From NCBI GenBank assembly GCA_964188305.1, contig OZ076890.1: a stretch of DNA of 64,000 nt. One strand, written 5' to 3'. Position 1 is the stretch's first letter, and each line of letters begins with the position of its first letter. This stretch comes from Podarcis bocagei (Eukaryota). This document shows positions 17,485 to 55,126 of this stretch, one piece after another. The position numbers were made by a program, and so were the translations under genes. The notes beneath the pieces were generated by a model, which worked only from the letters and a program-made list of their open reading frames with translations, ran no database searches and had not been told where the DNA came from.

Positions 17485-17485
<1 letters not shown>

Positions 17486-17719: not shown

Positions 17720-17778
<59 letters not shown>

Positions 17779-18595: not shown

Positions 18596-18614
18596 ATAAC
18601 ATTTTAAAAATTAC

Positions 18615-19587: not shown

Positions 19588-20170
19588 CTGAAAGGGAAAG
19601 AGCCAGCAATGTAGATGTTGCCTAAAGCAGTGGAACAAGCATTGGGAAAACAGCCATGCAAATGAATATTGACTAACCACCCCACCATAAGTCATTTTGT
19701 TGGCATTAAGCGTGACATTTTCGTCAGCCAGAAATAAGCATATGCCACCTAGCTTTCAATTTGAGACCTTCTTGCTCTTTTCAGTGCTAAGACACAGTCC
19801 TAAGAACGTTTGGAGCATTATCAAAATGTGGTTTGCTCATACCCTGTTCCCATCCAGCCAAGATCAGGGGCAATGACTTTCAGAGATTCCAGCCCCTGGC
19901 CTTGTTTTCTATAAACAAATTACTACAATCAGTCAGCAGCAACCTTGCACATAGCATATGCAATTCTAGAATATTTATTCTATTCTTAATAGATTGTCCT
20001 GGCGGTGATTGGGAAGGATTTTTTCCCAACCACAGATTGGTCAGCGACAATGAGAAAGTAGTGCCGAGTGTTTGTGTGTGTGTCATCATTGGCATGGCTC
20101 ACTTTCTTGAGCTATCAGGGCATCTTATTTCTGCATGCACCCAAATCCCAGACATCTTCAAGTTACTCAC

Positions 20171-20278
20171 ATTGGCCCCGTGTTTTAACAAGACACTGGC
20201 ACAGGCAGAATGTCCCCCTAAGCAAGCTTCGTGGAGAGGAGACACACAATCTGCTGTCACAAGATTCACACTACTTCC
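20171..20278 (-). CDS. ASB9: ASB9 coding exon 3
   Basis: GSSVNLVTADCVSPLHEACLGGHSACASVLLKHGAN. 108 nt. Confidence 0.93.
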
Positions 20279-22573
20279 CTGGTTTAAAATAAAAAGAAAG
20301 GATAATTAGAGGCTGATCCCTGCATGAATCTGAAATGTTTTATGTTGCCAGCAGTGCAAGTCTATTCACTAATACTCAGAGGCAAGTCCCATTAATTTAA
20401 ATTAAATGAGGTAAGTGTTGTGTACAGCATCACAGTCCTAAGCACTGGAGCACCCTTGGTCTCAGAGACGGTAGCGATTGTTGTTTCAGTTGCGTAAGTC
20501 CCACTGAGGTGAGGAAGGATTGTAGGACACTGCCTCAGACCATTGGTCCATTTAGTTCAAAATTCCAGACACTGACTGGTAGCTAGTGGTGGACAAATCT
20601 GTCACCTTGTTCTCTCATTTTATCCATTTTTCAAATCTTAAATTCAGTGCTCGACATTTCTGCAGCAATGTGGGATTTTTTAATTCTCACAAAAAACCAT
20701 CAGCATTTTCATGCAAATTTATCCTAATAAACACATTTTCACATGCAGTGCCGGCTAATATACATTTCTGTAAGCAATTTCCTCCTAACAGGATACCTTT
20801 TCTAAATATAGAATCGAACACTTTCATCTAATACACTCATATTCACATTCTTTGGTTGGAGAACTACATTGCAAAGTTCAGAGACTCTGCACAGCTGTTG
20901 TTAATATACTACTGCATTAGTCAGCAGTGCCATTCCCCACACCCATGTTCCTTTTGCAATGCCTATTTACAAGTAAATTCCACTCAGGAAGGTTCATCCC
21001 GATGCTAATGACAAGCCTCCTGTTTGCAGTTTCAGCTTGTTGATCTGGGCTCTGATCTAAATAGCCTTTGTAAATTTCCACAATGTCCGTTTCTTTTCCA
21101 GAGTGGTGGGGGTGATACCCTCTCACTGTTTTCTCTTTTCTTTTTCAAACGGTAAAATGGCATTAAGTTTCAACATTTAAAAATGAGAAAAAGGAAGTGA
21201 GAAGAAATCAGTAAGTAAGGCTACCATCCTAACTTGACAGCAAATCCCATGGCACTCAATAGGACTGATTTCTGACATGGTTACAATTGCACTGTAAAAC
21301 TGCCCCACACCCTGCTACAATTCTGGAAAACGAAACAAACACAGGGGGAATTAGATAGGGTCTATTGCAGGCTTATTAACTACTCGCCCCTTGGCCTGGA
21401 TCAAAAGCAATAAAAAGTTCATCAATAAAATGGACTGTACTTGCAAAGACAGAGTGTTCAGTTTAAAGGCACTGGAGCCCCGAAATACCGTAATAGCATT
21501 TCACCTGCTCACCCTGGACAAGCTGATGCTGCAACTGCATCTTATTGCAAAATAATCACTATAAATTGAGGGTAGAAAAACTTGGGGGGCTTACCCACAA
21601 AATACTAGACTGCAACAGTTAATAACAACAAAATACTAGACTGCAACAGTTAATAACAACACATATTAAAAAAGTGAGTGGACACAGAAAGAAGTGCTCA
21701 TATGGAAGCATCCCTGTTCACAGAATTGGAAGTGACCTCAAAGGCCATGTAGCCCACCTCCCTGCCAATGCAGCAAACAAGTGTCACAGCATCCCTGGTA
21801 GATGGCCTTCAGGCCTCCACTAAAAAAAAACTCTGAACAAAGGAGGATCCACCACCTTCCAAGGCAGTCTGTTGAGTACCAGCTAGTGGGGCAGAGTGTC
21901 ACTCACCTGGCTTCCCAAAACAGGTTGCTACCGATAATCAAGGGTGTGTTGAGGTGGCAGAGAGGTCAGCATGGTTGCAGGAGGAGAAGTGTTGGACTGG
22001 CTCTGCTGCTGCATCTGCACCACGCCAGCATCACCACGGCCTCACCTGCTCTGTTATCAGCAGTGACCTCCACATGGGAAGTCGAGTGAGCAATGCTGCT
22101 CCACCTCACCAGCTGCTACTGGTCTGGTCCATTCAACGATATCCTTCCTTTTGCCTTCAATACAACTTTCTTAATGGGATTAATGCATAGTGTTCCTCTT
22201 AAGCTATGCTACATGTTTATATATGATTCGTTTTATCAGCCCACTTAGTCAACATTAACATGTAGCTTCCAGAAAGCTCCCGCTGTCATTAGTGGACTTA
22301 TGCAAAAGTGAGATGGATAATCACCATTCCTCCTACAAAGAACAACTGAAAGGATCTCTTCCCTTTCCAACTCTCAACTCTTGGGGTGCTTTGTTTTTGT
22401 TTTCGTTTTGGTTTCGAATAGCTCACAAGACTACCATTTTCTGAAAACATTACATTTTAGTTCTCCTTCAGGTCAACACATATGTCAAACCTTTGCTACC
22501 TTACTGCATAAAATGGACAAGAGGCTTAATGAGCAAGGCAAAATCAATGTTTATCTCCCTAATGGTGCAGTAC

Positions 22574-22653
22574 CTGATGGATGAGTTTCTTCAGAGCAAG
22601 CAGCTGCCCATGAATGGAAGCATCGTGCAAAGGAGACCAGTCAGAAACAAAAT
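22574..22653 (-). CDS. ASB9: ASB9 coding exon 2
   Basis: DFVSDWSPLHDASIHGQLLALKKLIHQ. 80 nt. Confidence 0.92.
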
Positions 22654-24358
22654 CTGCATCAAGAGGGGAAACAAGGTTTAAGAATAAGAATGTGATTAAA
22701 TGAAGTTATCTACTCTTGGTTTGGGGAAAGTAGCTCAGTAAATCCGGCACTGTCTAAAAGGATTCTTAAAGGTTAAGCGATATCCATGTGTTTGAATGTG
22801 ATTACCGTACTTCATCCCTGCTTCAGTAAGCAAAAGCAATTGTGTTTTATTACCCGACCTGTCAACCTGATCTCAAGGCAATGAACTTCGAGGGAAGACC
22901 AAACTGTTGCATGCTAGAGAAACAGATAAAAAGTCAGTATCATAGCACATCCATTGGCATGTCTTTTCTTTTCTTTTCCTCTTCAATGATGATGCTTGGC
23001 TAGTATCCATATATATACTACCTTGATATACTCTCCTTGTTTGCATTACCTAGTAGGCAGAACAACAGATTATGCCAGGTATGCCTGCCTATACTGTTTT
23101 TACTCCCCTTCCTCTGTTATTTCTCCTGGGTCAGATTTTAGCTGGTAAACTCCACAGAATAAGGACAGCATGCACTTTGATTGTTTAATAACAACAGCAG
23201 CAGCAACTGCTACATTCTGGAATGATTTACAGACTGCTATACCATTCAGAATGTCATCATGAGAGAAGGTCCAGCTGCTGGCAATGTATGGTTTTCCGCT
23301 CAATTTGATAATAAAGATACTGCAGTACCTATCTGTGAGAGGAGACTCCTTCTTCCATGTTTTGTCACAGATCATTAACCAAACTGCTAAACAAACATAA
23401 ATCCTCAATAATGGCTCACTGGAAACACAGCTCAGCAAAACAGTGAAACCTGAAAAGGTATCAAAATACCCTCTCAATAACTTGTTCCTTAACTATTTTT
23501 TACTCCTTTCCATTTTTTTATCTCATCCATGCCCTCATACTTTTCTTTCAGTTCTGCTCATTCTCATTGACAAGAACTCTTCCAGGCCAATCACATTTAT
23601 GCTTATATCATTGCAACAACCTCTGAGGTTAGACTGAGGCAAAGTGTCCTGGTTCACATACAATATTAAGCCATGGCTTGTTTACCCTAACTGTGGTTTG
23701 TTTGAATGTCCAAACCCATCCCAGTAAAATAATAACAGTTTGTTTTCCGCCAAAAAAAAAACATAACTGTTTGTTGACTTATGAACTCTGCCTTGTTTTT
23801 ACTATGGTTTGGTGTCACATCTGAACCCAACAGCCTTGCTGAACCATGGTGAGTCTGTTCTCCTCACCCCTGACACTTGTAAAGCTAAAATGGCACAAGA
23901 CAAGAGTAGTTGGAAAACAAGCCAAAATTTGGAGAAAAGAAGGCATGGCTTGCTTGTTCACTTGCTTGTGACATGACTCATGGTTTGTTGAACAAAGTAT
24001 GGCTTAGAATTATGTGTAAAAACAGCCAGTGACTGGTTCAAAATAATCAGTGATGTTCATGGGGAATCTGAACCAAAATCCCAACATTCCAAGAGTAAAG
24101 TTGCAATTCTCTACACACTTACCTGGGAGTAAACTCTATTGGACATGCATAGGGTTGCACTGTAGCACTCTACGCATTTGAACTACACCAATTCATTGTG
24201 ATGTATCTTAATCTGTGACACATTAGTGAGGGGAGTTTAGATGAATTGATCTCCTGATCCATACCTAAATCTTAATTTCCAGCTTTTAGCCACAGACATG
24301 AAAAACATCAAATGAATATGTTATTTTTAAAATTATGAATGGTTTAACATTAGAATAA

Positions 24359-35966: not shown

Positions 35967-36091
35967 TTATCGGAACAAAAGAAAATCTTCAAGTCGTTCA
36001 GGTAAGTGTAGTTTGTGGACTAAATAAAGGCATGATCGGCCCAAGCATTTTCGGATACACAATCGGCACAGTTGGGCAAGCCTAGGAGGGC
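35967..36091 (-). CDS. ASB11: ASB11 last exon (SOCS box)
   Basis: GPPRLAQLCRLCIRKCLGRSCLYLVHKLHLPERLEDFLLFR*. 125 nt. Confidence 0.95.
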
Positions 36092-36679
36092 CTGGTGGAA
36101 GAGAGAAAAAAGAACAGTAGTATGAATTCAATAATGTCAACTCAGAGATAAGTACAGCATATATCACTGGGCAGAAATCTAGTCTATAAGGAGACTGTGA
36201 CTCAAGGGTAGGCAAATCCAGGTAAAAAGCTAGATAGAAAAAGCATCATTAATTCAAATTTAGATTTTAGCTTCCATGGGAATAATTGGGAACCTAGATT
36301 ACACTATATTTAGCTCACTAAATAATTTTTGAAGCACAACGATACAGAACCTGGGCTTTAGTTAAACCAAAGTAATTTAATAAAATTTTCACTATTCTGT
36401 ATATAGAGATAAATGCTACACTCTTGTCTGGTGGCTTTCCATTTCCATTTTTGCTTTACAATTTAATTCCCAGATTTTTATGCACAGGCAAAGCAGATCA
36501 CTTCCTTTCCCCATCTCCATATATTTCATTTGTATAGCCATGATCTAATTGGCTCAAATTCTCTTAAAGTCATTCAAGGACATCCCTGTAACCAGTTAAC
36601 CCCTAAGAACCTCTGTGGACAACAATAAGACCTGACAATTTGCAAGAAGCATGACGGTGACAAATGTCTAGGCCATTAC

Positions 36680-36871
36680 CTTCCCGGAGCAACAGTGCCC
36701 GTTCAACAGAGCTATTAGGTGCAGCAAGATCAAGAGCACATTTTAATTCAGAATTTCTACATTTCAAGCTGGCCCCGTAGTCTGTTAACAAGGTGACAAT
36801 TTCTGCACTGGATTTTCTAGCGGCTGCATGAAGTGGTGTGTCCAGTCCCTTACCCAGGTTGACACTAGCTC
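36680..36871 (-). CDS. ASB11: ASB11 exon 6
   Basis: GASVNLGKGLDTPLHAAARKSSAEIVTLLTDYGA...ALLLREG. 192 nt. Confidence 0.95.
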
Positions 36872-38113
36872 CTTGGAGAGAATGTATGGAAAGGAAAACA
36901 AACCAGTTAGCATTACATGGAAAGAAGACAAGAAGACAGCAATGTGAATTTTTATTTCCTCCTTTAATACTTTTTCTTAACGCTGGAATAAATTACTTCT
37001 CTAAAAACTATTTCTATGTCAGCAGCTAGGTTTGTTCCCCACCCCACCTCCCAGGGAACTGAGGAACAGATAAGAGAAGTAGGGATGGAGTCTGCATTCC
37101 AAGGCAAAATTACTTAACTCACTTTCTGAAACAATATGTGAACTGAAACGCAACTATCCTTTGAAATTCAGACTTCTTGGAATTTTGCTGTGCAGTTCTC
37201 CAGACAAGTAAAGTGCACAAAATGCATTTACTAGGCTAAAATGTGCATAGAAATGCATTTATTAATGGAAATAACATACCAAAATGCATTTATTAATGGA
37301 AATAACATACCAAAATGCATTACGTTAAGGAAAATTACTTGCAAAATGACTTTAATAATAATAATCACAATAATCATAAAAATCTTAGCCCTTGGAACCA
37401 ATACTAGCTCCAGCCTCCAAAAGTGGGGTATGCTAACATCAGTCCTCCTTTTCCTTCAGGTGAGGACAATTCTCAAGGCTTGGAGTATAAATATTATTTA
37501 GGGAGATAAGGGAGCATCCCAGTGATGCCTGTCCCTCCCAGGCACCAGGGCTGTTGATTTCTTGCAGTCTCCCTAGGCTTGGAGATGTAGCACGACAACA
37601 AACTTCCCTCAGCATCTGTATTAGAGACTTGGCTGGGCTACATGTTCTGCTTGCTTCTAGGAAATGGAAGCTTAGGAACTAGCCAAGGTCCGCACAGAAT
37701 GTTCCAGACTTGCATTTATATCTCCCTGTCAGCCATTTGGAGTATTTTTTATTTTTATTTTTTGAGTTTCAACACTATTTACAAAGATACAGTAAAAACA
37801 ACTAAAACAGTTTGTTTTAATAGAAAAAACAAAACAAAATAAGATGGACTTAAAAACAATACAAAATAAACACCTTTACACCGAGCTGGGAAAGCTTGTT
37901 GAAACAAAAATGTCTTCAATGGTTTCTGGAAATTACAAATAGTGGACAGCTGCCGTATCTCAACAGAGGTGCTGTTCCACAGAACAGGGACAGCTGTTCT
38001 GAAAGCCTTGCTCCATCTTACAATGGAGTGTGTTCCTGAAATAGTGTTGGCATGTTGAGGAATGCAGCAGCCCACCAATCCCATCCAAGAAAACCCAACA
38101 CACGCCAGAGTAC

Positions 38114-38248
38114 CTAGTTCTAAAAGTTTCTTGACACAGTCTGTCCTTTGATTCACGCAGGCCACATACAGTACTGTTCCATGCTGTGGGTTTTCTTGGT
38201 CCACATCAACACCATTGGCTAAAAGAATTTCCATACATTCCCTGTGGC
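38114..38248 (-). CDS. ASB11: ASB11 exon 5
   Basis: GHRECMEILLANGVDVDQENPQHGTVLYVACVNQRTDCVKKLLEL. 135 nt. Confidence 0.95.
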
Positions 38249-38302
38249 CTATGTAAACACAGAGGAGAAAACCTTGTTGAACTATAGAGCAGCAAGTGGC
38301 CT

Positions 38303-38653
38303 AAAGGTAAAGGGACCCCAGGCCATTAGGTCCAGTTGTGGCCGACTCTGGGGTTGCAGCGCTCATCTCACTTTATTGGCCGAGGGAGTCGGCGTACAGC
38401 TTCCTTGTCATGTGGCCAGCATGACTAAGCCGCTTCTGGTGAACCAGAGCAGCGCACAGAAACGCCATTTACCTTCCCACTGGAGCAGTAACTATTTATC
38501 TACTTGCACTTTGATGTGCTTTCAAACTGCTAGGTTGGCAGGAGCAGGGACTGAGCAATGGGAGCTCACCCCGTCGCAGGGATTCGAACCGCCGACCTTC
38601 TGATTGGCAAGTCCTAGGCTCTGTGGTTTAACTCACAGCGCCACCCACGTCCC
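38303..38653 (-). mobile_element. Sauria-SINE-like element
   Basis: Reverse complement of the 24359-24712 family. Confidence 0.85.
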
Positions 38654-39270
38654 TAGAAACCCTCTAAATGCTCTCTAACTAGACACTCCTAAACCCCATT
38701 GACCTGAATCCTGCCTCTGAAGAATGATGTGGGATGGACTGCTTAACCCTTCCCCCACAGCCATTTTTCTACTCAAAATTTCGTCCAGCTGCTTCCCTTC
38801 CCTTTGTTTATGTATTGTATTTCTTTGTCACACAATCACTGTTTGCCCACCAATTTCCTGCCCAAATTCCACACACACCTTGTTTCTATTTACTTATTTA
38901 GAAAGGTTTTGTCCCCATCCTCTTCCTTGCTGAGTTCTACAATGGTTAACACTGTGACTTAGGTGGAAGATGAGGAAGCTGACAGGCAGGATCCACGCCT
39001 GGGCTGGTTGAAGACTGAGGTTGGTGAGGCAGCCTCTAGTGACCCTGAGTCTCCCTGCATCACCAATGAAGCTTAATGCCTCTGATAACTGTTTATGGCT
39101 TTCTACCTGCTCTGCTCATCAACAGTGGCCCAGAATTGGGAGGGCAGGGGGAATGGGCTGGACCCACCTTGTTAGGCAGTCAATTGGAATCTCACTTGGG
39201 ACCGACAAGCTCTGCAGAGCATCTGACATTCTTGTATCTAGTTAAAATTATCCCAAACCACTACTGTTAC

Positions 39271-39421
39271 CTCTCTTGACAGCTTCATGAATCGGGGAAG
39301 CAAAATGATTCTCCAGTTGCGGCCGGGCACCAAATTCAAGCAGCATATCGACGGTAGGGGCACTGCCACAACGGCAAGCATTAAACAGAGGTGTGATCCC
39401 ATCTAAAGTGACTGCATTCAC
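39271..39421 (-). CDS. ASB11: ASB11 exon 4
   Basis: VNAVTLDGITPLFNACRCGSAPTVDMLLEFGARPQLENHFASPIHEAVKR. 151 nt. Confidence 0.95.
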
Positions 39422-39623
39422 CTGCAACACAGAACAAAGACAAGACTGAGGGTGTGGGTGGATGCTGTTAGAGAGTCAAGCACTTCTTGTTATTGATTTC
39501 TTTTTATGGTATTTGTGCCTACTTTTAACTCTTCCATTTTGATTATCTTCTTGGACATTCCCAATAATACAAAATGCACACAGTTCCCCTGTTAGATCCC
39601 ATTTTGAAGCAGCATCTCTCATA

Positions 39624-39849
39624 CAGTGGTACCTCAGGTTAAGAACTTAATTCGTTCTGGAGGTCCGTTCTTAACCTGAAACTGTTCTTAACCTGAAGCA
39701 CCACTTTAGCCAATGGAGCCTTCTGCTGCCGCCGCGGCACCACAGTACAATTTCTGTTCTCATCCTGAGGCAAAGTTCTTAACCTGAGGTACTATTTCTG
39801 GGTTAGCGGAGTCTGTAACCTGAAGCATCTGTAACCCGAGGTACCACTG
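39624..39849. mobile_element. Tigger/pogo-like MITE
   Basis: Same TIRs and TA TSD as 1958-2166, in the opposite orientation. Confidence 0.8.
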
Positions 39850-40043
39850 TACAGGAAAGCAGAGGCATAGCTACAGGGGGCTAGCAAGGTTTTTTGCCCT
39901 GGGTGACTCCTCCAGAGGGGCAACCATTGAAGCTCCCAGCCTCTGTGTGCATACACAAATGCACGTGGAGGGTGTGCCAAACTGGGGCTTTGACCCTGTT
40001 GAAATAAAGCCTAGTTTAACCAGGAGGTCATGGTAGTACTCAC

Positions 40044-40151
40044 CCGAGCACCATGTTCCAGTAACACTTTTGCACAAGCAACATGGCCACCCAAGCAAGC
40101 CTCGTGAAGAGCAGTAACATGGTCTATTGTAACAATGTTCACATTGAACCC
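40044..40151 (-). CDS. ASB11: ASB11 exon 3
   Basis: GFNVNIVTIDHVTALHEACLGGHVACAKVLLEHGAR. 108 nt. Confidence 0.95.
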
Positions 40152-40745
40152 CTACAGTTGAGAACAAAAGGTATGGATAATAATCAGTTCCAAAATAATA
40201 ATAATGTATAGCTACACGGATTTAATATTGGCTTGAATTAAAACACCCTTTTCCAGTGGTTAGATTTGTGGTTCAGCAAAATTTAATCTGCAAGAGTTCT
40301 CCCAGAACAAGCATAGTTTAAGCAATCCAATTTCTCTAACTGAAGAGAGATTGGATGCAAGAGGTATAAAATATCGGCCTGCTACTTACCTACTTCATGG
40401 GGCTCTTGTGAGAATAAAATAGAGGGAACATGTATACCACTCTGCATTACTTCAAGGAAAGGTGAAATAAAAATGCAATTTTAAAAATAATTTTTAAAAA
40501 CTCTTTACACAGCAGCATTACTCAGCAATAGAGCCTTCTCCACAATATGAACTAATTGATGTGCTCAGTTCCCCTGGAAACAGAATTTTATGGGGAATCA
40601 GTGTGAAGACAGGTAAGTAGAGAATATGGTAAGAAATTTATTAATAAATCACCCATTGTCTCCTTATGGATGCTGAACTGGTGTGAGCATGAGCAAAGTT
40701 TGTGAAGAAAAATTGCATTGGGAGAAAAAGAACTATGAACACGGC

Positions 40746-40890
40746 CAGTGGCGTAGCGTGGGGGGTGCAGGGGGGCTGGCCGCACCGGGCGCAACATCTG
40801 GGGGTTAGGGTTAGGGGGCGCAAATCCACGGGTTAGGGGGCGCAAATTACTTGCTTGCCCCGGGTGCTGACAACCCACGCTACACCACTG
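40746..40890. mobile_element. GC-rich hAT MITE
   Basis: TIRs CAGTGGCGTAGCG...CGCTACACCACTG with 8-bp TSD AACACGGC/AACGCGGC. A sister copy lies at 58532-58686. Confidence 0.8.
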
Positions 40891-41332
40891 AACGCGGCTG
40901 CTTCTAAAGAATTCATGGTTTTGGACTTCTGCTACGCCAACACTTCAAGCTGCAGTCTAGAACTTATCCCTCTCTTGTGTCTTTCCAAAAAATTGACACT
41001 TTCACCACTACAATAAACAGATCTGGAAAAGGAGGGGGATTTTTGTTTCTAAATCTTGGTGAAAACACCCTGGGCAACCTGCAGTCATTGTGTGAATTGG
41101 CCCTAAGTTTATTCCCTTTCATGCAATCTTTGCAAGCTCTGCTCAGTTCAGTTTTGAATTTGCACACTCAACACTGAATTTATTTGTGTAGTCTGTATGC
41201 ATTGTTGTGAATAGAATGTTTGGGGTGCAATCCTATACACATTTAACCTGAGGGCAAGTCTCATTGCTGCTCAGTAGACATGTAGGATTGCATTGTAAAA
41301 TCAGGGAAGTACGGTATATTAGGGTTTCTTAC

Positions 41333-41412
41333 CTGTGCTATCAAGGTTTTCAATGAGAGGAGGCGCCCTTGAAAGGCGGCTTCGTGAAGGGGAGATCTGT
41401 CTGCCCATGAGC
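41333..41412 (-). CDS. ASB11: ASB11 exon 2
   Basis: GSWADRSPLHEAAFQGRLLSLKTLIAQ. 80 nt. Confidence 0.95.
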
Positions 41413-41454
41413 CTAAAACAAGATCACTGAAAGATAAGTCTATAGAACAGAGAT

Positions 41455-41640
41455 CCCTGCTCCTGCCAACCTAGCAGTTTGAAAGCACATCAAAGTGCAA
41501 GTAGATAAATAGGTACGGCTCTGGCAGGAAGCTAAACAGCGTTTCCATGCGCTGCTCCCTTGGCCAATAAAGCGAGATGAGCACCACAACCCCAGAGTCA
41601 GTCACAACTGGACCTAATGGTCAGGGGTCCCTTTACCTTT
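41455..41640 (+). mobile_element. Sauria-SINE-like fragment (5'-truncated, internally deleted)
   Basis: Matches the 3' half of 24359-24712, with the CCTTTACCTTT tail. Confidence 0.8.
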
Positions 41641-41777
41641 AAATACAATTATGCCCCTTTTTATAGAGGAATGTTATTTGGGCATTTCTTGAGGGAAAAT
41701 GGCATCCTCAAGTTCTCTCCTTTGCTACAACATGCAGGATCACTTTCTGCCCAGAAACCTTGGATAGGTAGTATATA

Positions 41778-41818
<41 letters not shown>

Positions 41819-42992
41819 CCATGCTCTGATATCATCATATATATGTTCCTCCACTCACCATCATCAGTGGCCCAATGCAAATTATTTTGCTTTAACATGG
41901 AGCAGGGAACAGTGTCTGAACCGAGCATTAGGTCGTTATCTCCCCCACCTCCCGTAGGCCAAATTTAACAAGTAGGTGGGGCCACCCGCCTGTCGATTGC
42001 CTGACAACATAATGAAATCAAGCCACGTGGGCTGCACAAAAAGCACTTTTCAAAGCACTCTGCACAACCTGACCATCAGCCAGTTGTCATGTCTCGCAAA
42101 ACCTATTGCAAGACCCCAGTAGAGAGCCATTTGAAACACTTTGCAAGACTCATCAATCAGAAACTGGTGACTAGACTTCTGTTCCTTCACGGCCCATTTG
42201 GAGTCAATAAGAAAGGAGAGAGAGAGAGAGAGAGAACAACCATACTTCTGTTGTGATCTCGTGCATGCATACAGGGCTGTCTTTACCCGGGGGTGCAAGG
42301 GGCGCCAAATGTTTACCTCTCTATCAGTGGCAGTGAAAAGCAATGGAGCGTAAGTCCCCACCCCTCCTCCATTGCTCTGTTACTCCATAGCATCAAACAA
42401 AAGCAGTTTTTTTCTGCTGCACCATTGTTACAGGTGAGCAAAACCCCCCCCCAAAGTCAACAACTTTGAGTTCACCCCCCTAAAAAAGGGGGCTCTGGGC
42501 CGATCTTTGCACCCCGGCGACGCATATGCTAAAGATGGCCCTACATGCACATCTAGCAGTCAAATCCCACTGAGCACAGTGTGACTTACTTCTGAATAAA
42601 TAGGTGCACTCAGTAAATCCATGTAATTCTTATTGTGATATATAGCAGTTGGAGCAGGGGCTCCAGTTACATTAAGCAGAACCGTGCCAGTTCTGTGATT
42701 AATTGATATCACCTTCCATTTTCCGTAACTTGGGTTTGGCTCTCTTTATACTCTTAAGCCATGAAGCTCAAAGGAGCAAATATTGCCTTACCTGTGATGC
42801 TGCAAACAAGAGATGCATTAACGTACAAAATAGCACGAAATGTGAGGGTTAAATATAACCATGAAAACAAGAACAGGCCCAGGCTATAAATATCTGTACG
42901 TGTCCGTCTTTTAAGTACAAGCTTTCTACATGCAGCTGCTTAATGTATTTGCACAAAGAGAGCTGTAGTTTTCTAAGCAACCTAGAACATAC

Positions 42993-43083
42993 CTCCTTGA
43001 AACATATGACAAATATAATTCCCATAAGGTACACCTCTTAAGGCTCCAGGTACTGAAGGCATCCCGGAAACGGTATTTTTCAT
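42993..43083 (-). CDS. ASB11: ASB11 alternative first exon 1b
   Basis: MKNTVSGMPSVPGALRGVPYGNYICHMFQG|gtatgt. 91 nt, phase 1. It resembles the human alternative N-terminus ...GDYICHTFQG. Confidence 0.8.
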
Positions 43084-44433
43084 GAAGCTCTGAGAGTAAA
43101 TGCAGCAGCGCTGGACAGCATTACTTTAAAGCTTAGCGGTAACGATGTGTAAGTAATCTAATCGAGGTCAGAGCTGGTGGTCAGGTGGTGTTTTGAAAAA
43201 CGATACTCAGTTTGACAGACTGGCAAAAGGCAACGTGGCAGAGAAAAAGAGCGTAGATAACCAATACCTTTTCGTCTGAATTGTTTTTATTTTATTTTTT
43301 TAAGCCTTCAGTGAGGGAAACTGATGTGTTTGAAAATAAACATATGCTACCTTATAGAATTGCAGAGATAAGTGGGAACTGCAGGCCATAAAATGTAGAG
43401 AGATTAATAATATCATTCATAACCATTACTGCTTCTGACAGATTTACTGACTCCGACGGGACAGCTCATTGATACTTATGTAGCCTAGACACAAATAAAT
43501 TATACCTAATAAATATTATAATTGCATCATTTACAGATCATTTTGTCTCCATGACTGATGTTTGAAAAACCACATTGTTGCAATTGTGTATTTAAAAGCA
43601 GTTTTTCTCCCCTGTTCATGTTTGACATTGCAGATTAAAATTTGTAGCGTGCACAACTTTGTATTTGCAAGGCTATGAGAATGCCTAGGAAATAAGCCGG
43701 CGATAATGGAAGATTTTTGATAATGTCAGTTTAAATGATGTTAAAACCCCCTATCCCTGCATTCTCCATCATTTTATTGCCATGGATGAATCATAAGTAG
43801 CCAGGACTGCGATGAACCCAGAAGGACATTAAGTCAACACATCTGGCCAAAGACCCAAGCTTAACATTTTGTGATTCATTCACATATAGTAAAGTTGTAA
43901 ACTTGCTGCCCTGCTTGGCAGAGAAAGCAGGAACAATCCAGTTTCATCCCTCCAATAAAAGCGAGCCAAGCCACGTGCAACTGCTGTTCAAGCAGACATT
44001 TTACTCTCCCAGCAAGTGTCTTCTTTCAGAAAAGGCATATTCTAAATCTTTCACATTTTTGTACGCATAATGATGCAACAGACCCACAATAAGACCGTAT
44101 TAAATAAATACCGAAATAGTTTAAATAGCAGCATTGCAGAATTCTGGCTTTTAAAATAATAATAACAATAAAAAGAAAACCTTATTTCCTATAACAAAAA
44201 TAAATATCACCTTATATTGAAGCACATTGGTTTTCCCTGCTAATCTTTAATTCTTCATCTTAGACATATTCATTCTAGCTTATGCTTGTATTAACAAAAT
44301 CATACACACATTTATATTTCCAACCGGCTTGATTACAATGCAGTCATGAGTATCAATTTTTGACAATTTCAGTGATTTTTTGGGTTTTTTTTAGATCAGT
44401 TAGTTTTTTAAATATTTATCTCTACAATTTTAC

Positions 44434-44611
44434 CTGGGGCTATTCCATAGATCTCTTCTGCTATCCTTGCAGCCTCTTTCCTGTTCCCTTTCACAATATA
44501 GAAATGGGTCAGTAAAGCCAAAGAGATTTTGATTAAGAGCTTGAAACAAAACAAAGCAAAGATTGCAAAATAAATGTTATTGAAAGCATTGAGTATCGTA
44601 CTGCCTTCCAT
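44434..44611 (-). CDS. ASB11: ASB11 first exon 1a (hydrophobic N-terminus)
   Basis: MEGSTILNAFNNIYFAIFALFCFKLLIKISLALLTHFYIVKGNRKEAARIAEEIYGIAP. 178 nt. It matches human FKLLIKVFLALLTHFYIVKGNRKEAARIAEEIYG. Confidence 0.93.
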
Positions 44612-47049
44612 TTTGTTTTGCCCTTTGTATAACTTCACAGGTCTCCTAAGTTACATTCACTATTATTGGTATCATATGACATCTATTTTAAACTCTCCGG
44701 CCGCTGATGTTCCTCTGTTACCAAAAATACACCCTGTTTTTGTCCCAAGCAAGCTATTGATATTAAATAACAATGCTTAGGATTAAAAAAAAGCTTAATG
44801 CTTTTCTCTTCCTGTTCAGATTTGTGCAAATTCATGTTTATTTCATCCATGTTTATTTCATCCCACTGTATTCTATTTGTATATTCCATTTTAATATTTG
44901 TTAAAAGAGGAACAATCTGCCCTGTGATCTCACAAGGAAACACTGCATTCAGCATTCCTAAATTTATATAGTAATTTATTTAGGTTTGAGCTAATTTTTA
45001 TGGACATTTGCATAGAACATTTTCTTTTAATTCGTATGTTTCGAAGTTGCAGTGTCTTAGGAACCTGTTAATAATGTCCAGACAACACTAGGTGGAGCTA
45101 TTGGAATACAACATTTTCCTGTGTAATCTGTCACAGTGTGGCAGGCCGAAAGAAAGGTTTATGCCTACTTACCGTAGTCTAGATCAGTTTACATCCACAA
45201 GACATTAATGAAAGTGGTCAGTTAATTGCCCTTAACACTAAAAGGAGATTAGCCCATATATGATAATTTGCTGCAAGCTACTGCAAAAAAAATTGCAAGC
45301 CATTATCATTGCATGAATTTCTGGCCCCCAAAATTGCCATTCTGTGAAAGCCATTTTCCAAATTGCATTTAACTCCCCCATCTACCTCATCACAAGTGAG
45401 TCTTACGGAGAAAGAGAACCATTTGGACAAATGTCAAACCACTTTGTGAGGGGAAAAAGCTAAGTGCTTGTTTTTTCCACAGCCTTCTTTAGTGATGCCA
45501 GAATTGAACCTGGTACATTTGGTACATTTTATTCTTTATTTATTGAATTTATATATCGCCCTATACCTAGGGGTCTTACTACTGTGCCTTACTACTAAGA
45601 TACAGTCCTTTCCCTTAAAGAAGCTAGTATTTGAAAAACACAGTACTGGCTTTCTCAGCCGCCAAACCTTTAAACCAGAGGCAAGGAACCTGTGCCCATT
45701 CATGCTGGGCTTCAGCTCCCAGCAGACCCAGCCAACAGAGCCAAAGGGAGATTTCAGTCCATTTTAAATAGCAGACTTGGGGTTGGGAGTGAGATCCAAT
45801 TCCGATCATGGCTGGGGTGGAGGCAAAAGGTTCAAGCTCCCATCCCCACATGGCATAGTCCTGATCTAGTGCATTATTCTCCTTATGGCCTCGGGCCGTA
45901 TATATCCAGTGGATCACTCACACAGGTGAGGGATGGTCTCCTGTAAATACCACTGTTATCAGCAAGTCCCTTCCGCACAATGGAAGAATTAAGCCTTTCC
46001 TGCTGTGGCGCCTTACCTTTGGAATTCCCTCCCCTTGAATATTAGGAAGGTGCCATTTTTGACGCCTTCTCAGCGCCTGCTTAAGACCTTCCCTCCTGTT
46101 AAGTTGAGATCTTTCCTCATCTGCATCTGTACTGGAATTGTTTTTAAGGTAATTTTATTGTTGCATCTCTTAGAAGCCATCCTAGGCTCCTTTGGGAGCA
46201 GGGTGTAAAGTAATAAGAAGGCTAATTGCAATGCAGATGAGTGGTTTTGGAGAGGATTACATCTGGAGGGAAGGGTGAAACCTTCCCTAGCATCAAATAA
46301 AAAATCCCCTGCTGCAGGGTTAGCATTTAGCTTCACCCCAAGTCTTACCACATGAGTGGTAGAACAGAATTCTTTAAAAAGGAGGAGTGTGGGGACATTT
46401 TTATTCCATGTGTATGGAATGAAAGGATGCACAGGAAAACCTCTAGTCGTAGTTCATTCCTTCTGACCAAGCTTGCCATAGAAATTATACACGTCACTGC
46501 ATATTACTTAATAACTGGTACCTTTATTTTTCTATATACATTTTAAATATGGCACATCAGACAGTAGTTCTAGGATAAACCCAAATAATAAAACACAGAT
46601 AGACAGTAGATCGAATCATTCAGTGCTGAATGCATTAGGGAACCAAATTTTAGAAGGTCTGGAAAAGTTGGTCTAAAAAGAAATATGACCAATAAGCAGG
46701 TTGAAGGCATAGAACTATTCTCTGCATTTCAAAGTTGCTTCGTAAAGATATCCCCATTGCTGCTAACATGCCGCTTTCTTTTTCATACAACATCAATGAA
46801 CGTAGGTCTTTCTGGTAGTCTGTTACAGAACAAGGATAAAGTTTGTTGTAGCATATATCAGCAGTCAGGTGGCAATGTCCTTGCAGATCCATTCGCCGTC
46901 TTAATAACGAAGACAGACTGGATTTTAATTGTATTTTTTAGCAGTAAAGCCACCCATATCCATGATCATTATTGTTTAACAGTCAATGGTGGGCAGCTAC
47001 TTTGCAAAGCAGTGTGGTAGTGGTAGTACAGGAGATAACAAAAGCTCAG

Positions 47050-47176
47050 TCATGGTGTTTCTCTGCTTTGGGACCCGTGAGGACTTCTTCCCCCTCTTGG
47101 GCGGCAACAGTGCCTCGAGCAGGCCGGCCGAGCGGTTGGGCACATTCTGGCTTGGAATGGGCATTTGTCTTCACAG
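47050..47176 (-). CDS. VEGFD: VEGFD last exon (7)
   Basis: SCEDKCPFQARMCPTARPACSRHCCRPRGGRSPHGSQSRETP*. 127 nt. Confidence 0.9.
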
Positions 47177-47471
47177 CTGTTTGAAGACAGTAAGTCAGAG
47201 AAGACAATGTGGTAAGTGCACCCTTCTGTTCCATGGAGTATGTACAGGAACGCATGAAAAGACTATGTCCATTACGGTCATGTGAAGGGAGGTACAGAAT
47301 GGCTCCACATTGCATGGAAGATCTTCATTCATTATCATTTTGTTACATGGGAGATTTACGTGCTACACAAGCCCTATCATTTAGTACAAATTTCAACCCG
47401 GGGTGGGAATCAATCAACCTGGCTGTGGACCAAGCATGCCGCATAGAACTCAAATGTAATGGAAGGCTTAC

Positions 47472-47638
47472 CTGCATGTTTCTGCATTAAACTCCTTGTG
47501 TTTCTGAAGGCAGCTGTCTTGGTTCTCCATACACAAGTAACAGCTGCAGTTCTCTTTGTTCTGAAATAAATTGCCAGTGCATTTCCATTTACAGGTGCAC
47601 TCACAATTTTCCTCATCAAAGTTCATATTTGGTGCACA
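47472..47638 (-). CDS. VEGFD: VEGFD exon 6, conserved portion (5' boundary defective in this sequence)
   Basis: CAPNMNFDEENCECTCKWKCTGNLFQNKENCSCYLCMENQDSCLQKHKEFNAETC|gtaagc. No in-frame AG acceptor upstream (see findings). Confidence 0.8.
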
Positions 47639-47807
47639 TGAGAGAGATAAAGGGTGTCACTCAAAGGTAATATCCTGCAGGTGTACAGCAAGACTTGAAC
47701 TTAACCTATAAAATGCACTATTTATGGCACTGTGAGTCCAGAAATCTGAACTCCTATTAACCTGCCATTAAAACAATGGAATCCACAGCTTGAAAAGAAT
47801 GTAACTA

Positions 47808-48036
47808 CAGTGGTACCTTGGGTTAAGAACTTAATTCGTTCCAGAGGTCCGTTCTTAAGCTGAAACTGTTCTTAACCTGAGGTACCACTTTAGCCAATGG
47901 GGCCTCCCGCTGCTGCTGCTGCGCCGCCGCCACACAATTTCTGTTCTCATCCTGAAACAAAGTTCTTAACCTGAGGTACTATTTCTGGGTTAGTGGAGTC
48001 TGTAACCTGAAGCGTCTGTAACCCGAGGTACCACTG
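47808..48036. mobile_element. Tigger/pogo-like MITE
   Basis: Same TIRs and TA TSD as 1958-2166. Confidence 0.8.
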
Positions 48037-49000
48037 TATAATGAAGTTGATATTCTAGCAGAAATAAACAGAGTCTGTATGGATACGGACTTTAAAGGTC
48101 ATGACAGCAATATACATACATTTAAAGTGTACCGCACACCCCAAGTATTCTAGGAACTGCAGTTCCCCCCTGCAGCACTATGTGTATGATGTATACACAG
48201 CCATTTTCTAGGGTGTGTGTTTTTTTCAGTTGGGCTCTAAAGAGCTAGCTTAGCCTGGCTTTGCAGGCTTTTTGCCTTCCCCCTTTTGAATAGAAGACCC
48301 TAATGACAATTTCACAAACTCCTCCTTAGTTTCTCCCACATGGTTTGCTTTGTGGCATGGGGCGGTGAGGTTGTTTAGGAAAAACAAAGTGCAAAGCACC
48401 CTTGAACATCTGGCGCTAGCTGTGCAGCGCTTTTGGTCCAGGTCATTAATTGCAATCACAATTATCTGGAGTTGCTTCTCTTCCTGGGGTGGGGCAGTAT
48501 TTGTCTCAGCAATGGCTAGAAATCACTTGGTAAGTATTTTCTTCCCACCCGCTTTGAACATCAGATTCTCAATGCCATATCATAAGGAAATTGCTCTTGA
48601 AACTTGCCCAGATTTTACTATCTTTCCAGGTGCACATAGCCTAGGATAATCAATGATGATGATGATGATGATGATGATCCCGCTGTGCATGCAAAGTTGG
48701 GTGGGAGTATCTGGGAGGAGGAGAAATGCTTTGCTTCAAATGAAGGAGTGTTACTTCTGTCTGACTGAGCTTCTCATTTCAGTTTATTCTAGTAAAAGCA
48801 AAATGCTTTTAACTACCAATCTGTCCAGATTTACTCTTTTGTTCCTGGATGCAGAGTTACAGAAGTGTGTGGGGGGGGGGTCACCTCCGCCCACCTATTT
48901 CAGTTTCATAATGTTGTTGTTCATAATGTTGTTATGTTGTTCTTTTAACTGGTCCAGATTTCAATATTAAAGTGTGTATATAAGTAGTACTAGTATATAC

Positions 49001-49098
49001 CTTCCCTTCTGCCAGGACGATCTTTGTCTACAACACATTCACATTTATCGCTGTCCCACATCCAGCCACTACGACACAGTTTGTTTATTTGGGGGCAA
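49001..49098 (-). CDS. VEGFD: VEGFD exon 5
   Basis: CPQINKLCRSGWMWDSDKCECVVDKDRPGRRE. 98 nt, phase 2 to 1. Confidence 0.9.
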
Positions 49099-49281
49099 CT
49101 AGAAGGAAACAAAAGACCAAATAAATATGTTAAGAACACATTTAAAAAGTAACTGATGTATACACACCGCTTCGTTATATGTTTCTTATGGAAGTGTGGT
49201 ATATAAATATTCAAATAAATACATGCAAAAATGGCATTTGAGAGCCAGCTTGGCGGGGGGAGGGGGCTAGTCAAATTAATT

Positions 49282-49635
49282 AAAGGTAAAGATAAAGGGA
49301 CCCCTGACCATTAGGTCCAGTCGCAGACAACTCTGGGGTTGCAGCGCTCATCTCACTTTATTGGCCGAGGGAACCGACGTACAGCTTCCGGGTCATGTGG
49401 CCAGCATGACTAAGCCGCTTCTGGAAAACCAGAGCAGCGCACAGAAATGCCGTTTACCTTCCCACCGGAGCGGTACCTATTTATCTACTTGCACTTCATG
49501 CTTCTGAACTGCTAGGTTGGCAGGAGCAGGGACCGAGCAACGGGAGCTTACTCTGTCACAGGGATTTGAACTGCCAACCTTCTGATCGGCAAGTCCTAGG
49601 CTCTGTGGTTTAACCCACAGCGCCACCCGTGTCCC
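49282..49635 (-). mobile_element. Sauria-SINE-like element
   Basis: Reverse complement of the 24359-24712 family, with flanking repeat CTAGTCAAAT. Confidence 0.85.
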
Positions 49636-50302
49636 TACACCTAGTCAAATACATTAAACTAGGGTTCCTCAATTTGGTGCCTTCCACATATTTTGGACTA
49701 CAATTCTCATCATCCCCAGCCGGCACAAACATGCTGGATGAAGCAGATGGTAGTTACAGCCCAGAACATCAGGAAGGTACCAGGTTGGGGAAAGGCTGAG
49801 TTAAGTAGACAGACGGCACATGGCTGTGGTGTATTGGGGCTCAGAGTCTGTTGAGAAGCTTCTGCATTTAGAGACATGTCTTAGGAACTTCGACCAGAAG
49901 CCTCATTGCCGTCAAAGGAACAGTTCAAGGAATTGCATTTGCTAAGTCATCAAACTGGGGCCTCGATACATTCCAACTGCCTGCTGTTTATTAATTTGCC
50001 ACAGCTGCCTGTGACAGTTTTGACTCTCTTTTTAAAAAATGTAAATATTAAAGATGCCACAGTAATTAAAAAATGCTGCTAGAAGAGAAGTCTATGCGTT
50101 ATGTAACATATTTCTACATTGCTTTTCCAAGCAGCCATTAACTTTTCTTTGTAGCATTGAAAAACATACTTTTTAAAAACATCGGATAACCGCTGATCTT
50201 AGAACAAAGCATACAATTCATGAACACTCAGAAAAGCTTCATGACTGATTGTGTATCTTTTTAAAAAAATGGGATAGAGAGAAGACTGACTGCCCATCTT
50301 AC

Positions 50303-50451
50303 CTATCCTCTTCTGGATATTGAACAGATCTTCGTATGATGGTGTACGATGGACGCTGAGCATTTGTTAAGCACTTGCAACCAGTGTGGTTTGCAATTTT
50401 GACTTGAATCGGATCTGGCACATTTGTTAAAGGAACTGAAATCTCAAAGAG
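50303..50451 (-). CDS. VEGFD: VEGFD exon 4
   Basis: LFEISVPLTNVPDPIQVKIANHTGCKCLTNAQRPSYTIIRRSVQYPEED. 149 nt. Contains the IIRR/S convertase site. Confidence 0.95.
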
Positions 50452-51055
50452 CTGGAAAGATGAAATACAGCATTTTTCACTACTCCTATTAAAACTCATC
50501 GTTAAATAGCCTCCCCTCATTGTTAAATAGCCTCCACATTTCCTGCTCAATGAAGCAAAATACCGGTAGTGGACTGAGCTTCATCTTAGGAATCCTCAGT
50601 TACAATTCACCCCTAAGGACATGCGATGGGCATGAGTCTAACATGTACCTGAAATCTTTGATAGTCTGCAGCTCCTTGTCATGTGTTCACGCCATGTCCT
50701 CCTCTTCACATTGTGGAGTCTATAGTTCTACAGACTTGAATGAATGTGGGACAGCCACACTTCCTCTGCCATGGTGAATAGATTCATAGCTATGGACAAC
50801 TTTCATGGCCTTGTTCTTCCCCAACATGGCGTCCTCTGCGTGTTTTGGGTTACAACTCCTATCAGCTGGGGTTGATGGGAGTTCAACGCCAGAGGACACC
50901 CCGTTGGGTGGCTGGTCTTCCTACACACACTTACTTAGGAAAGAGCTATCTATGAGTCTATTCCATTAAGAGGGGCTTGCTTCAAAGCCAACCTGCATAG
51001 GATTTGACGGTTAAGGAGAAACAAACTGCAGAAGAGTAGAAAAAAGTCCAAATAC

Positions 51056-51246
51056 CATTTTAGATATGTAAGATGTGCTGGTGTTCACGCAGCTTAGGCT
51101 CTCTTCATTGCAGCAGCCTCCGCATCTGTAGACATTCACACAAGGAGGCTTGAAGAATTTATTGGTGGCCATGCCCAGCTCTTTGGCAACTTCCACACAG
51201 GTCTCCCTCGGCACGCACTGAGTCCTTTGCCACTCCTCATCTATGA
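51056..51246 (-). CDS. VEGFD: VEGFD exon 3 (cystine-knot VEGF homology domain)
   Basis: VIDEEWQRTQCVPRETCVEVAKELGMATNKFFKPPCVNVYRCGGCCNEESLSCVNTSTSYISKM. 191 nt. Confidence 0.97.
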
Positions 51247-53301
51247 CTGGAGAACAAAGGAGCCATTCTAAAAGCAGCAATTGCCATCACACAACTGGGC
51301 TCACCAGCTCACTGGCTTGCTCTCTTGAGTCCTTCGTAGCTGTGTGAGATGCAGCACTGCACTTTGACAACATTATGACATCTGCTGTTTATTAATATAA
51401 ATGAGCCAAGCTAGTTGTGCAATGAAATGCGGCAGAGTGGAGTGCTCCCTCTGCCATGGTATTTCATTCCCACCCACCCCTGCAACAGCTGGTCAACATT
51501 TCATGGCCATGCTCAGTCCTCACTGGGCTGTCTGATAGACATGGTTCTCCCATGAGTTTTCCCTGTAAAAACCTGGCACTGCTGCAAACCAGTTTGTGCT
51601 TCCTTTCTGTGTTTGGATGGTCCCCTGTTGGCCTGCAGGGATGCACACTCACCTCTGAAATGGCAGTTTGGAAAGAGAGGGATCATGATCAATTCTGAAT
51701 TGCTTCAATAACAGTGAGAGCTTTACCAACTGACCACCATAGCTGATGTAGTTATAATTTTTCCCCTTATCCTTTCTGTGCTTTACAATGTGTTCTGTAA
51801 AACCCAGATATGATAGATTTTGTCATCAGGCCCCTTAGAGGTGCAGGACTGACGTGGTAACTAACCTCATGATCTGCCAGATCCACACAATGCTGCCCAA
51901 CACTGATGATCCAATGCCATCATTGGATCCAGCTTGGGGTGACATGAAGCTTATGAATACCAGTTGCAGGGACTCACAGCTGAGGAGAACATGGTGACCT
52001 TCAGGCCCTGCTTGTGGGTTTCTCCAAGACATCTGGTTGGGTCACTGTGAGTTCAGGATGCTAGACTGCACTGGGCCCTTGGCCTGATCTAGTCAATCTC
52101 TTCTGATGTAACTGGCCAGAAAAGGGGTGGGAATAATGTCTGGCCTTCTCCTGACCTTTTAACACGTATCTGATGAGCTCAAAGGGGGCAGGTGAATCTT
52201 TTCATAACATGGTGGCAGACATTATGACCTGCTCTTTGGTCACCTGATCAAATGGCTGTTAAAAGGGACAGCTATAAGGGCCAGTTCAGGAATTAGCAAC
52301 CTTTGGTCTAACTACAAAAATGCAGATGCCACAGCACACCCGTAGGGTATGACCAGAGCCCATGGCATCCTTTCCAATGTTTTAGTCTCTGTTTCTTCCT
52401 CTCTTTGTAAGAACAGATGTCCAGGAAGCTCCTGCCCAGAAAAGTCCAAGCTGATAAAGTGTTTTACATCAGGGCACACCTAATAAAAACAGGCATTTGA
52501 ATGTTTCTGCATTTCAAGCTGCTGTTGGCACATTCCTTTTAAATATTGCTGTCTGTTTACATTTTTCATTGCAGTGGAAAAATGCTTTGTTTAGAGCATC
52601 ATTGCTTGAACTGTGTTGTGAGCGGAAACAAAGAAAAATACCTAGTTTTGTGCAGAAAATCTAAAGAAGTCTGTGGCAGGCTTAGAGGACATTCCTCCTC
52701 TTTTTGGTCTCCTTTGGTACGTAAGGCCACTGCCCATATTGCATTCAGCACACGTGAGACGGGATGCCTGATACAGATCTTGCAACAATGGGTTTGACAC
52801 CTGTCTGCACTTCAAACTCAGAACTTCGATCAAGCACCCTTTCAGCACATTGCATTTTTTGTTTTGTTTTTTTCAGGGTGTGAATTTGCAAGTTTGTAGA
52901 CACCTTTCCAGGTGAGCACATTAAATCATGGAATGAATGCTCCATGGCTTATGCTTTCCTTCCAGGGATCCATGCAGCTTTTCCCAGGGTAGCACCCCAA
53001 GCAAAAAAAAAGTCCATTGCTTTATTGCTGACAAAATGTCATTTCCTCCCAGCCAAACAAGCACCACAAACACGGTTGTGGGATGCTTTCGGTATAGTGG
53101 CTATGCTATATCAATACATATTGGACAGTGTCTGGGAAATCTCTAGACACATGGTGACTCCTATCCGTACCATTTTTGACTTTTTAAAATATTATTTTAC
53201 TTTATTTTCAAATGGATTTTTTTTTTAAAAAAAGACAGCTTCCTCCTTGTAGCACTCAGAGCACTGACATAACCTTATGAACAAGGAACAGACCCATCAG
53301 T

Positions 53302-53340
<39 letters not shown>

Positions 53341-54127
53341 AGGCACAAAAACAAAATGCATATAACAACCTGCCTTTCACATAAAAACAGGGGTGGCCCG
53401 AGACCTTTTGGCACCTGAGGAGAAACATCTCTCAAAAGTATGGATAATTTGGATGGTTAAAATTTGGATAAGTATTGATATGCAGTTATAAATATTATTA
53501 TTAGGACCCATGGAAGGGAAGGGGGAAGTCAGGAGATTCAGAGCAATCTCGATATATGGATCTTGAATTATTTTTTATGTGTGTTTATATTTGTTAAAAA
53601 TCAAATAAAAAAAACTTACACACAAAAAAGAGAAACGTCTCACAGCCGCCACCCCACCACACCCACACACCCCAGATGCGAGCGCAAACTCTGTAAGTCT
53701 TCCTCATCGGACCAGGGTATGGGTGGTGGTGAGGAAAGATCCTTTCTTGATTTCCACTTCCTGCCCAGCAGTGGAGTTAGGATTGACTCTTCCCATCAGG
53801 AAAAGCCGACCAAAGCCCCACCACACTGCCCGGTGAGGGGGACGAATCTCCCACCGACTTGTCAGCAATGCCTGTCCTCTCGCCAACTTGGTAGGAGGTG
53901 TTCTGCAGAGCTTTGCTGCCAGTCCTTCACAGCTGCTAGAGACCAGGGAGAAGACCAGTGGCAAAGCTGCGGGGTGGAAGAGGGGTGATGCTTCTTGCAG
54001 GATGCCACCTGAGGCAGCTGCCTCACCCAGCCTCATGGGTGGGTCAGCTCTGCATACGAACAAGACAGCAGCCCGACATATGTCACTGTGGATCCAGAAA
54101 TATTCAGTTCATAAACTGTGAGCCTAC

Positions 54128-54338
54128 CTTTCAGTATCTCAATATCATAGAAAGCAGCGGCAAATCTCGTGGAGCGATGCGAGGCTGATCTGGAATCCAG
54201 AGCGGCCATGCCCTTGAGCTTTAGCCGGCACTTCCAAAGCTTCCAGTCTTCAGAGTGGGTGATGCGAAGAAGCTCTTCCAGGCTAGCAGCTTTCCTGATC
54301 TGCTGCTCTGACCACTCCAGGGCAGAAAGTGACGTTCT
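54128..54338 (-). CDS. VEGFD: VEGFD exon 2
   Basis: RTSLSALEWSEQQIRKAASLEELLRITHSEDWKLWKCRLKLK...SRSASHRSTRFAAAFYDIEILK. 211 nt. Confidence 0.97.
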
Positions 54339-55126
54339 CTGTAAGAAAGGGGGCGGAAACAGAAGATCAGTCCTGTGCCTACATATATAGACCTTAGGTA
54401 GGAAAGAGCACACATTTCTGTTGAATATGCAAATGTAATATAGACTGTAAAAATATAGACTTTAAAATATATATCAGGCTGGGTTAAATAATCACTCTTG
54501 GATTAAAGGAGGTGTTATTTTCTAAGGTTTGTAACTAAAGAATTGGTTACAAAGGATCCCAGATATGGGATCACCAACCCATGGTTTTTCTATTATTTAT
54601 TTATTAACTAAATTTATATACCACCCTTCATCCTAGCATCACAGGGCAGTTTACAATATAAAAATACAAAAATACATAGCATACTAACAACAAAAGCAAT
54701 AAAAGCCATTGGTTGTTTAATTAGCCAAGGGTCTGGTAGAAGAGGAATGTTTTTGCCTGGTGACCAAATATATGTAATGAAGGCACCAGGTAAGCTTCCC
54801 CGGGGAGAGCATTCCACAAATGGGAGGCCACCAAAGAAAAGGCCTGTTCTCGTGTTGCCGCCCTCCAGACCTCTCCTGGAAGAGGCACACAAAGAAAGGA
54901 CTCCGATGATGGTTGCAGGGTCTATTCATAAGGGGAGAGGTGCTCCTTGAGATACTGCTGGATAAATAATCCAAAATGTCAGGAGTCTGTCCCTTGTTCA
55001 AATCTGATCAAGAATTCCTAATCATAGAAAAGAAATATGAAGAATTCCCCTAGCATACCAAGAAGTGCCTTGGGATAAACAAACATATATCCAGTCAGTA
55101 GAATCATGAAGAACTGACTTACAGTA

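Follow-up and report, generated by a model that had tools for sequence, protein, structure and literature searches.

PIGA encodes the catalytic subunit for the first step of GPI-anchor synthesis; it is needed to attach GPI-anchored proteins and is essential in vertebrates. In mammals, the X-linkage of this gene explains why one somatic mutation can give rise to paroxysmal nocturnal haemoglobinuria. In human, the genes around it are ordered ASB9-ASB11-PIGA-VEGFD, and a block of the same composition is found in birds and fish. In chicken, BMX, VEGFD, PIGA and ASB11 are listed with consecutive Ensembl gene numbers, PIGA standing between VEGFD and ASB11 (PMC9957280). In the locus of another bird, Vidua (L003), a 453-aa PIGA gene recognised by PF08288 lies upstream of ASB11 on the same strand, with 6.7 kb between its end and the start of ASB11. 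In a fish (L006, GCA_977066305.1), PIGA is represented by exons 2-6, of which exon 2 is split, and an ankyrin-SOCS gene of the ASB9/11 type comes next, within 3 kb. Since bird, fish and chicken all keep PIGA beside an ASB gene, the arrangement of squamates reported below is the derived one. The only turtle locus considered, that of Carettochelys, contained neither PIGA nor VEGFD within the 10-kb flank upstream of ASB11.

Two minor observations concern the genes of this block. In the ASB9/11-type gene of the fish (13630-16046 of the same record), nothing was found to match exon 1 of tetrapod ASB11, which resembles a membrane anchor. A dog UniRef entry of 315 aa (P0285) is called 'Ankyrin repeat and SOCS box containing 11', yet its Pfam domains are those of the PIGA family and it matches PIGA of squamates; the name is probably a slip that arose from the adjacency of PIGA and ASB11 in mammals.

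The wall lizard Podarcis bocagei was compared with this block through a single stretch of 64 kb, hereafter the window. As in birds, mammals and fish, VEGFD, ASB11 and ASB9 follow one another in the same order and on a single strand, and the first exon of ASB11 together with its 5' flank is conserved from the wall lizard to birds. The wall lizard differs in one respect: no PIGA stands between VEGFD and ASB11, where it would usually be found. A preliminary description of this DNA had given the gene order as the same in other vertebrates, which holds for the bird, for chicken as reported in the cited paper and for the fish; squamates, taken as a whole, depart from it.

Flanking genes and content of the VEGFD-ASB11 spacer

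ASB9, ASB11 and VEGFD are all encoded on the minus strand of the window. ASB9 extends from ~12740 to 22700 and was recognised by its Ank and SOCS_box Pfam domains. ASB11 (35970..44611) comprises seven coding exons, which were located by tblastn with the annotated ASB11 proteins of gecko (P0098) and Pogona (P0337) and by the Pfam domains Ank and SOCS_box. Exon 1 (about 44434-44611, with its ATG at 44611..44609) matches residues 1-64 of both annotated proteins with 89% identity, and the remaining six exons lie below it down to 35970, the SOCS-box exon occupying 35970-36143. Residues 1-322 of the gecko and Pogona proteins are thus covered by the window, with 67-89% identity per exon except for exon 2 (about 41315-41536), which is ~50% identical in a padded alignment. 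When the ORF of exon 1 was used as a query against 1.8 billion representative proteins, the best full-length match was a bird ASB11, and a second search that followed listed ASB11 from many vertebrates. ASB11, VEGFD and the snake PIGA discussed below were compared exon by exon.

The growth-factor gene on the other side we take to be VEGFD and not VEGFC, from its position beside ASB11 and from the C-terminus of VEGF-D. Its last coding exon (47050..47176) was read from the translation of 47053-47262; it ends in a TGA stop codon at 47052..47050, and its acceptor was placed by eye at ~47177. In gecko, the gene adjoining ASB11 has a PDGF domain, and its last exon shares 62% identity with this one; for the python gene in the equivalent position, the figure is 54%. 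Coding exons 2-6 lie upstream on the minus strand (47471..54461), each contained in a stop-free piece of the six-frame translation: exon 6 in 47471-47656, where Pfam finds the CXCXC repeat, exon 5 in 48993-49310, exon 4 in 50302-50580, exon 3 in 51014-51286, with the PDGF/VEGF domain (Pfam, E 1.8e-19), and exon 2 in 54036-54461. The upstream exons of VEGFD accordingly reach at least 54461.

Between the ATG of ASB11 (44611) and the stop codon of VEGFD (47050-47052) lie 2,438 bases (44612-47049). The two N runs of the window are found at 12273-12412 and 16411-16539, and none falls within this spacer. Over 44251-47500, GC content varies from 0.32 to 0.47 and the observed/expected ratio of CpG from 0.14 to 0.43; the spacer holds no CpG-rich promoter of the kind expected of a housekeeping gene. 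Its longest stop-free stretch encodes 127 aa on the minus strand (46073-46453). Among the ORFs of the spacer that begin with a start codon, the three longest gave no Pfam domain, PIGA and Glyco_transf_4 included, and the 120-aa start-codon ORF at 46070-46432 is without a Pfam match. The preliminary description had given the distance as about 2.4 kb, with no N-gap, no PIGA-like ORF and no CpG island, and all of this is borne out by the measurements. It had also credited PIGA with a coding exon of more than 700 nt, which agrees with the 750 nt of the exon-2 ORF of rattlesnake PIGA.

PIGA was searched for with tblastn, using exons 2-6 taken from the bird Vidua, the fish and the rattlesnake (L007) as queries. 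The best match in the whole window had an E value of 0.37, and the best in the spacer an E value of 1.9. No recognisable relic of PIGA is present in the spacer or in the rest of the window.

What the spacer does contain can largely be read from comparison with other squamates. Next to ASB11, a block at 44428-44790 shows 86-88% identity (blastn) to its positional counterpart in gecko, python and Pogona, and the block starting at 44428 shows 83% identity to bird, where the match reaches 44741 only. The part of this block that lies within the spacer (44612..44790, minus strand) is the conserved 5' flank of ASB11 and probably includes its 5'UTR and core promoter. Further along, a conserved non-coding block (45021..45461) aligns to the regions upstream of ASB11 in gecko (L002 5622-5986), python (L009 7629-8022) and Pogona (L008 4816-4932), with 68-73% identity and with order and orientation kept; blastn gave no match for it in the bird locus. 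This block is a candidate squamate regulatory element that may serve either ASB11 or VEGFD.

Two repeat-derived stretches follow. The first (45471..45637) is a fragment of a high-copy interspersed repeat, over which the summed depth of contigs reaches ~9,000-24,000 in all four runs examined, versus ~15-50 in the flanks, and at whose edge (45539-45565) contigs end. The second (45972..46305) resembles a SINE or the tail of a LINE; depth over it rises 5-15 fold, and an ORF at 46005-46208 encodes a motif that resembles LINE/SINE tails found elsewhere in the window. Next to VEGFD, 46424..47049 on the minus strand most likely represents the 3' untranslated region of VEGFD, as suggested by alignment to gecko and python and by an AATAAA on the minus strand, read directly at about 46400-46405. 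In gecko, 46424-47228 aligns with 70% identity to the last exon of VEGFD plus its downstream sequence (L002 59-841), and in python the alignment covers 46553-46729 and 46872-47187. The content of the spacer is best explained as the VEGFD 3'UTR, a non-coding block conserved among squamates, two repeat fragments and the 5' flank of ASB11.

The same slot in other squamates and the new location of PIGA

The ASB11 loci of other species were examined with flanks of 10 kb, exon 1 of ASB11 being placed at 10001 in all three squamates. In the gecko Eublepharis (L002), the last exon of VEGFD is found at 31-228 and the annotated 350-aa PDGF-domain gene to which it belongs ends at 231; between VEGFD and ASB11 there is no called gene, no ORF of at least 120 aa and no PIGA exon. 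In python (L009), the last exon of VEGFD lies at 1520-1687, and neither a PIGA exon nor a called gene separates it from ASB11. In Pogona (L008), VEGFD lies outside the 10 kb upstream of ASB11, in which no PIGA exon was found, and ASB9 lies downstream. By blastn, the last exon of VEGFD, the non-coding block and exon 1 of ASB11 follow one another in gecko and python in the same order as in the wall lizard, and in Pogona the non-coding block and exon 1 of ASB11 are likewise in order. Because these conserved blocks align in order, the 2.4-kb spacer of the wall lizard is a compact form of an 8-10-kb spacer common to squamates. A slot free of PIGA is thus shared by a gecko, a lacertid and a snake, three distant squamates.

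The absence of PIGA could also have been produced by the assembly, if at least ~10 kb holding the gene had been collapsed or misplaced, as the preliminary description had considered. Contigs from four public runs (X1, X3, X4 and X8; labels A, B and F; three studies) were therefore placed on 43300-48300. Run X1 may be the sample behind the assembly of the window, while X3 carries the species label of the window and comes from another study. In all four runs, 43300-47827 is tiled by contigs: a single contig (43300-44916) crosses exon 1 of ASB11, a middle one covers 44889-45564, and another single contig (45541-47827) reaches VEGFD exons 7 and 6. These contigs break at repeats within the spacer and are joined by overlaps of only 25-30 bases at the repeat edges (44889-44916 and 45539-45565). 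Such breaks are normal for contigs of this kind, and taken alone the contigs would be compatible with an insertion placed exactly at a repeat edge, a loophole closed off by the comparison with gecko and python, which shows the same adjacency. The same tiling without a large insertion was obtained from four runs, three species labels and three studies, the indels within 44612-47049 being small ones of up to 11 nt. In addition, VEGFD and ASB11 are adjacent in the independent gecko and python assemblies, with which the spacer aligns block by block. An assembly error is thus extremely unlikely and the suspicion of 10 kb or more of mis-assembled sequence is not supported; 44612-47049 is best explained as the true VEGFD-ASB11 intergenic spacer of Podarcis bocagei.

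PIGA itself has persisted in squamates. Exon-sized queries retrieved annotated PIGA proteins from Varanus komodoensis (a 189-aa GenBank model and a 421-aa RefSeq isoform X2), Pogona vitticeps (isoform X8), Sphaerodactylus townsendi (isoform X2) and Crotalus adamanteus (278 aa), and from tuatara too. The new neighbourhood was examined in one snake, Crotalus adamanteus, in a record (L007) taken from the 145.6-Mb chromosome sequence CM077936.1. There, PIGA consists of five coding exons and four introns over ~9 kb (9866-18822), with the usual boundaries. Exon 2 (9866-10615) is an ORF of 750 nt that starts with ATG and matches PF08288 (E 8e-43); it is followed by exon 3 (12544-12681), exon 4 (14481-14618), exon 5 (17470-17703) and exon 6 (18562-18822), which ends in a stop codon. 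By their sequence, the five coding exons look intact and the annotated protein of 278 aa would be a partial model. As the usual vertebrate exon pattern is kept, the Crotalus gene is not a processed copy. A weak CpG-enriched patch, with an observed/expected ratio of up to 0.83, is found ~1 kb upstream of the ATG exon. Some 4.7 kb upstream of PIGA and head to head with it lies a single-exon Sulfotransfer_2 gene (4051-5184, E 2.4e-63), whose nearest clusters in the protein atlas are those of CHST13 and CHST11; we offer its possible identity as a CHST11/13-like gene as a lead only.

The cluster table places ASB11 of Pogona on a sequence of 266,210,064 bp (the record of L008) and PIGA on one of 122,171,294 bp. 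For Varanus, ASB11 is assigned to a sequence of 138,280,312 bp and PIGA to one of 37,404,197 bp, a placement on which the GenBank and RefSeq accessions agree for both genes. Provided that the two proteins of each species were taken from a single assembly, PIGA of Pogona and of Varanus sits on another chromosome or large scaffold than ASB11. This proviso is likely to hold for Varanus, where GenBank and RefSeq accessions pair up, and is plausible for Pogona.

Proposed route and timing of the relocation

Genes are known to change place by DNA-mediated relocation, in which a duplicate is made and the parent copy is then lost, and by retrogene replacement, as for copies derived from X-linked genes. 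Squamate PIGA has features in common with both. As in the former, the Crotalus gene is intact, with its introns, beside unrelated genes, and its old neighbours have closed up; here, neither a two-copy intermediate nor a relic of the parent was seen, and the route is one that we infer. As in the latter, an essential gene whose block lies on the X in mammals no longer occupies its ancestral site, but squamate PIGA differs in that its introns are kept, as seen in Crotalus.

Very probably, PIGA underwent an old relocation at the DNA level in squamates, and the gene, intact and still containing its introns, now resides on another chromosome, a reading that is extrapolated from other squamates to the wall lizard's own PIGA. 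PIGA would once have stood between VEGFD and ASB11, where fish, birds and mammals have it to this day, and would have departed before geckos split from the other squamates, or earlier in lepidosaurs. Most likely, the whole gene would have been duplicated at the DNA level to a new site and its original copy lost afterwards; alternatively, the gene may have been excised by two breakpoints. This would have been a single old event, and the wall-lizard PIGA would probably lie at the same new site. With less assurance, we lean slightly towards the fuller proposal that PIGA moved only once, in the squamate or lepidosaur stem, without its neighbours, to a head-to-head place beside a CHST11/13-like gene on another chromosome.

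Relocation of PIGA in this lineage had been proposed in the preliminary description, by DNA transposition or by a retrogene. The relocation itself is upheld by the slot being empty in three squamates and by the presence of PIGA elsewhere in Crotalus, Pogona, Varanus and Sphaerodactylus, and as to mechanism the evidence favours the DNA-level route and goes against the retrogene. Had a processed, intronless copy taken over elsewhere before the original was lost, the slot would be empty and without a relic, as is observed. The rattlesnake gene, however, with its five coding exons over ~9 kb and introns at the usual boundaries, contradicts this explanation for snakes. The GenBank model of Varanus PIGA (P0208) points the same way, as it carries non-PIGA sequence that stops precisely at the exon 4/5 boundary. 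So do three squamate-like exon-5 ORFs found in assemblies of public runs (P0206, P0211 and P0212, their taxon being deduced from shared residues only), whose ends coincide with the exon edges, with intron-like sequence beyond. Replacement by a retrogene, contradicted in snakes and unsupported in the other squamates, is very unlikely.

It may also be asked whether PIGA was relocated several times independently, or whether a rearrangement carried away its neighbours instead. A single new neighbourhood of PIGA was seen, that of Crotalus, which leaves some room for independent moves, but the empty slot and the conserved block are common to gecko, lacertid and snake, so that one event in their common ancestor is the simplest account. 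VEGFD, ASB11 and ASB9 moreover retain the order and the common strand that are seen around bird PIGA, which speaks against both variants, and we consider them unlikely. Outright loss of PIGA in the wall lizard would agree with its absence from the window, the search having covered these 64 kb, but four other squamates have the gene and it is essential in vertebrates; the probability of such a loss is practically negligible.

Squamates have thus given up, with no sign of harm, a position of PIGA that is conserved from fish to mammals, and they offer a clean case of an essential single gene changing chromosome with its introns intact. If the single move in the stem is true, it would constitute a dated and clean DNA-level relocation of an essential housekeeping gene without its neighbours. 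The adjacency of VEGFD and ASB11 without PIGA is usable as a clade marker, and it calls for caution with synteny-based orthology and with "missing gene" calls in reptile genomes. Within a limited search of the literature, we found no paper describing the relocation of PIGA in squamates. The rearrangement is nevertheless already legible in public annotations; it is an ordinary lineage-specific break of local gene order and points to no novel biology.

Other features of the window

Just outside the spacer, the contigs of runs X3, X4 and X8 carry 53 extra letters at 47638/47640 that are lacking from the window and from X1. The site (47638-47640) coincides with the acceptor end of exon 6 of the minus-strand gene VEGFD. 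This difference may represent an individual or allelic deletion of ~52 nt in the window, rather than a fixed trait. The adjoining intron 5 of VEGFD (47642-48142) contains an extremely high-copy repeat, over which the summed contig depth is in the millions and many contigs join to themselves. At the other end of the window, an uninterrupted ORF of 1,346 aa (4477-8517) encodes a gag-pol protein of the Ty1/Copia type. Near-identical ORFs of 94-103 aa are found at 3569-3880 and 8524-8808, and probably lie within the LTRs of this Ty1/Copia element.
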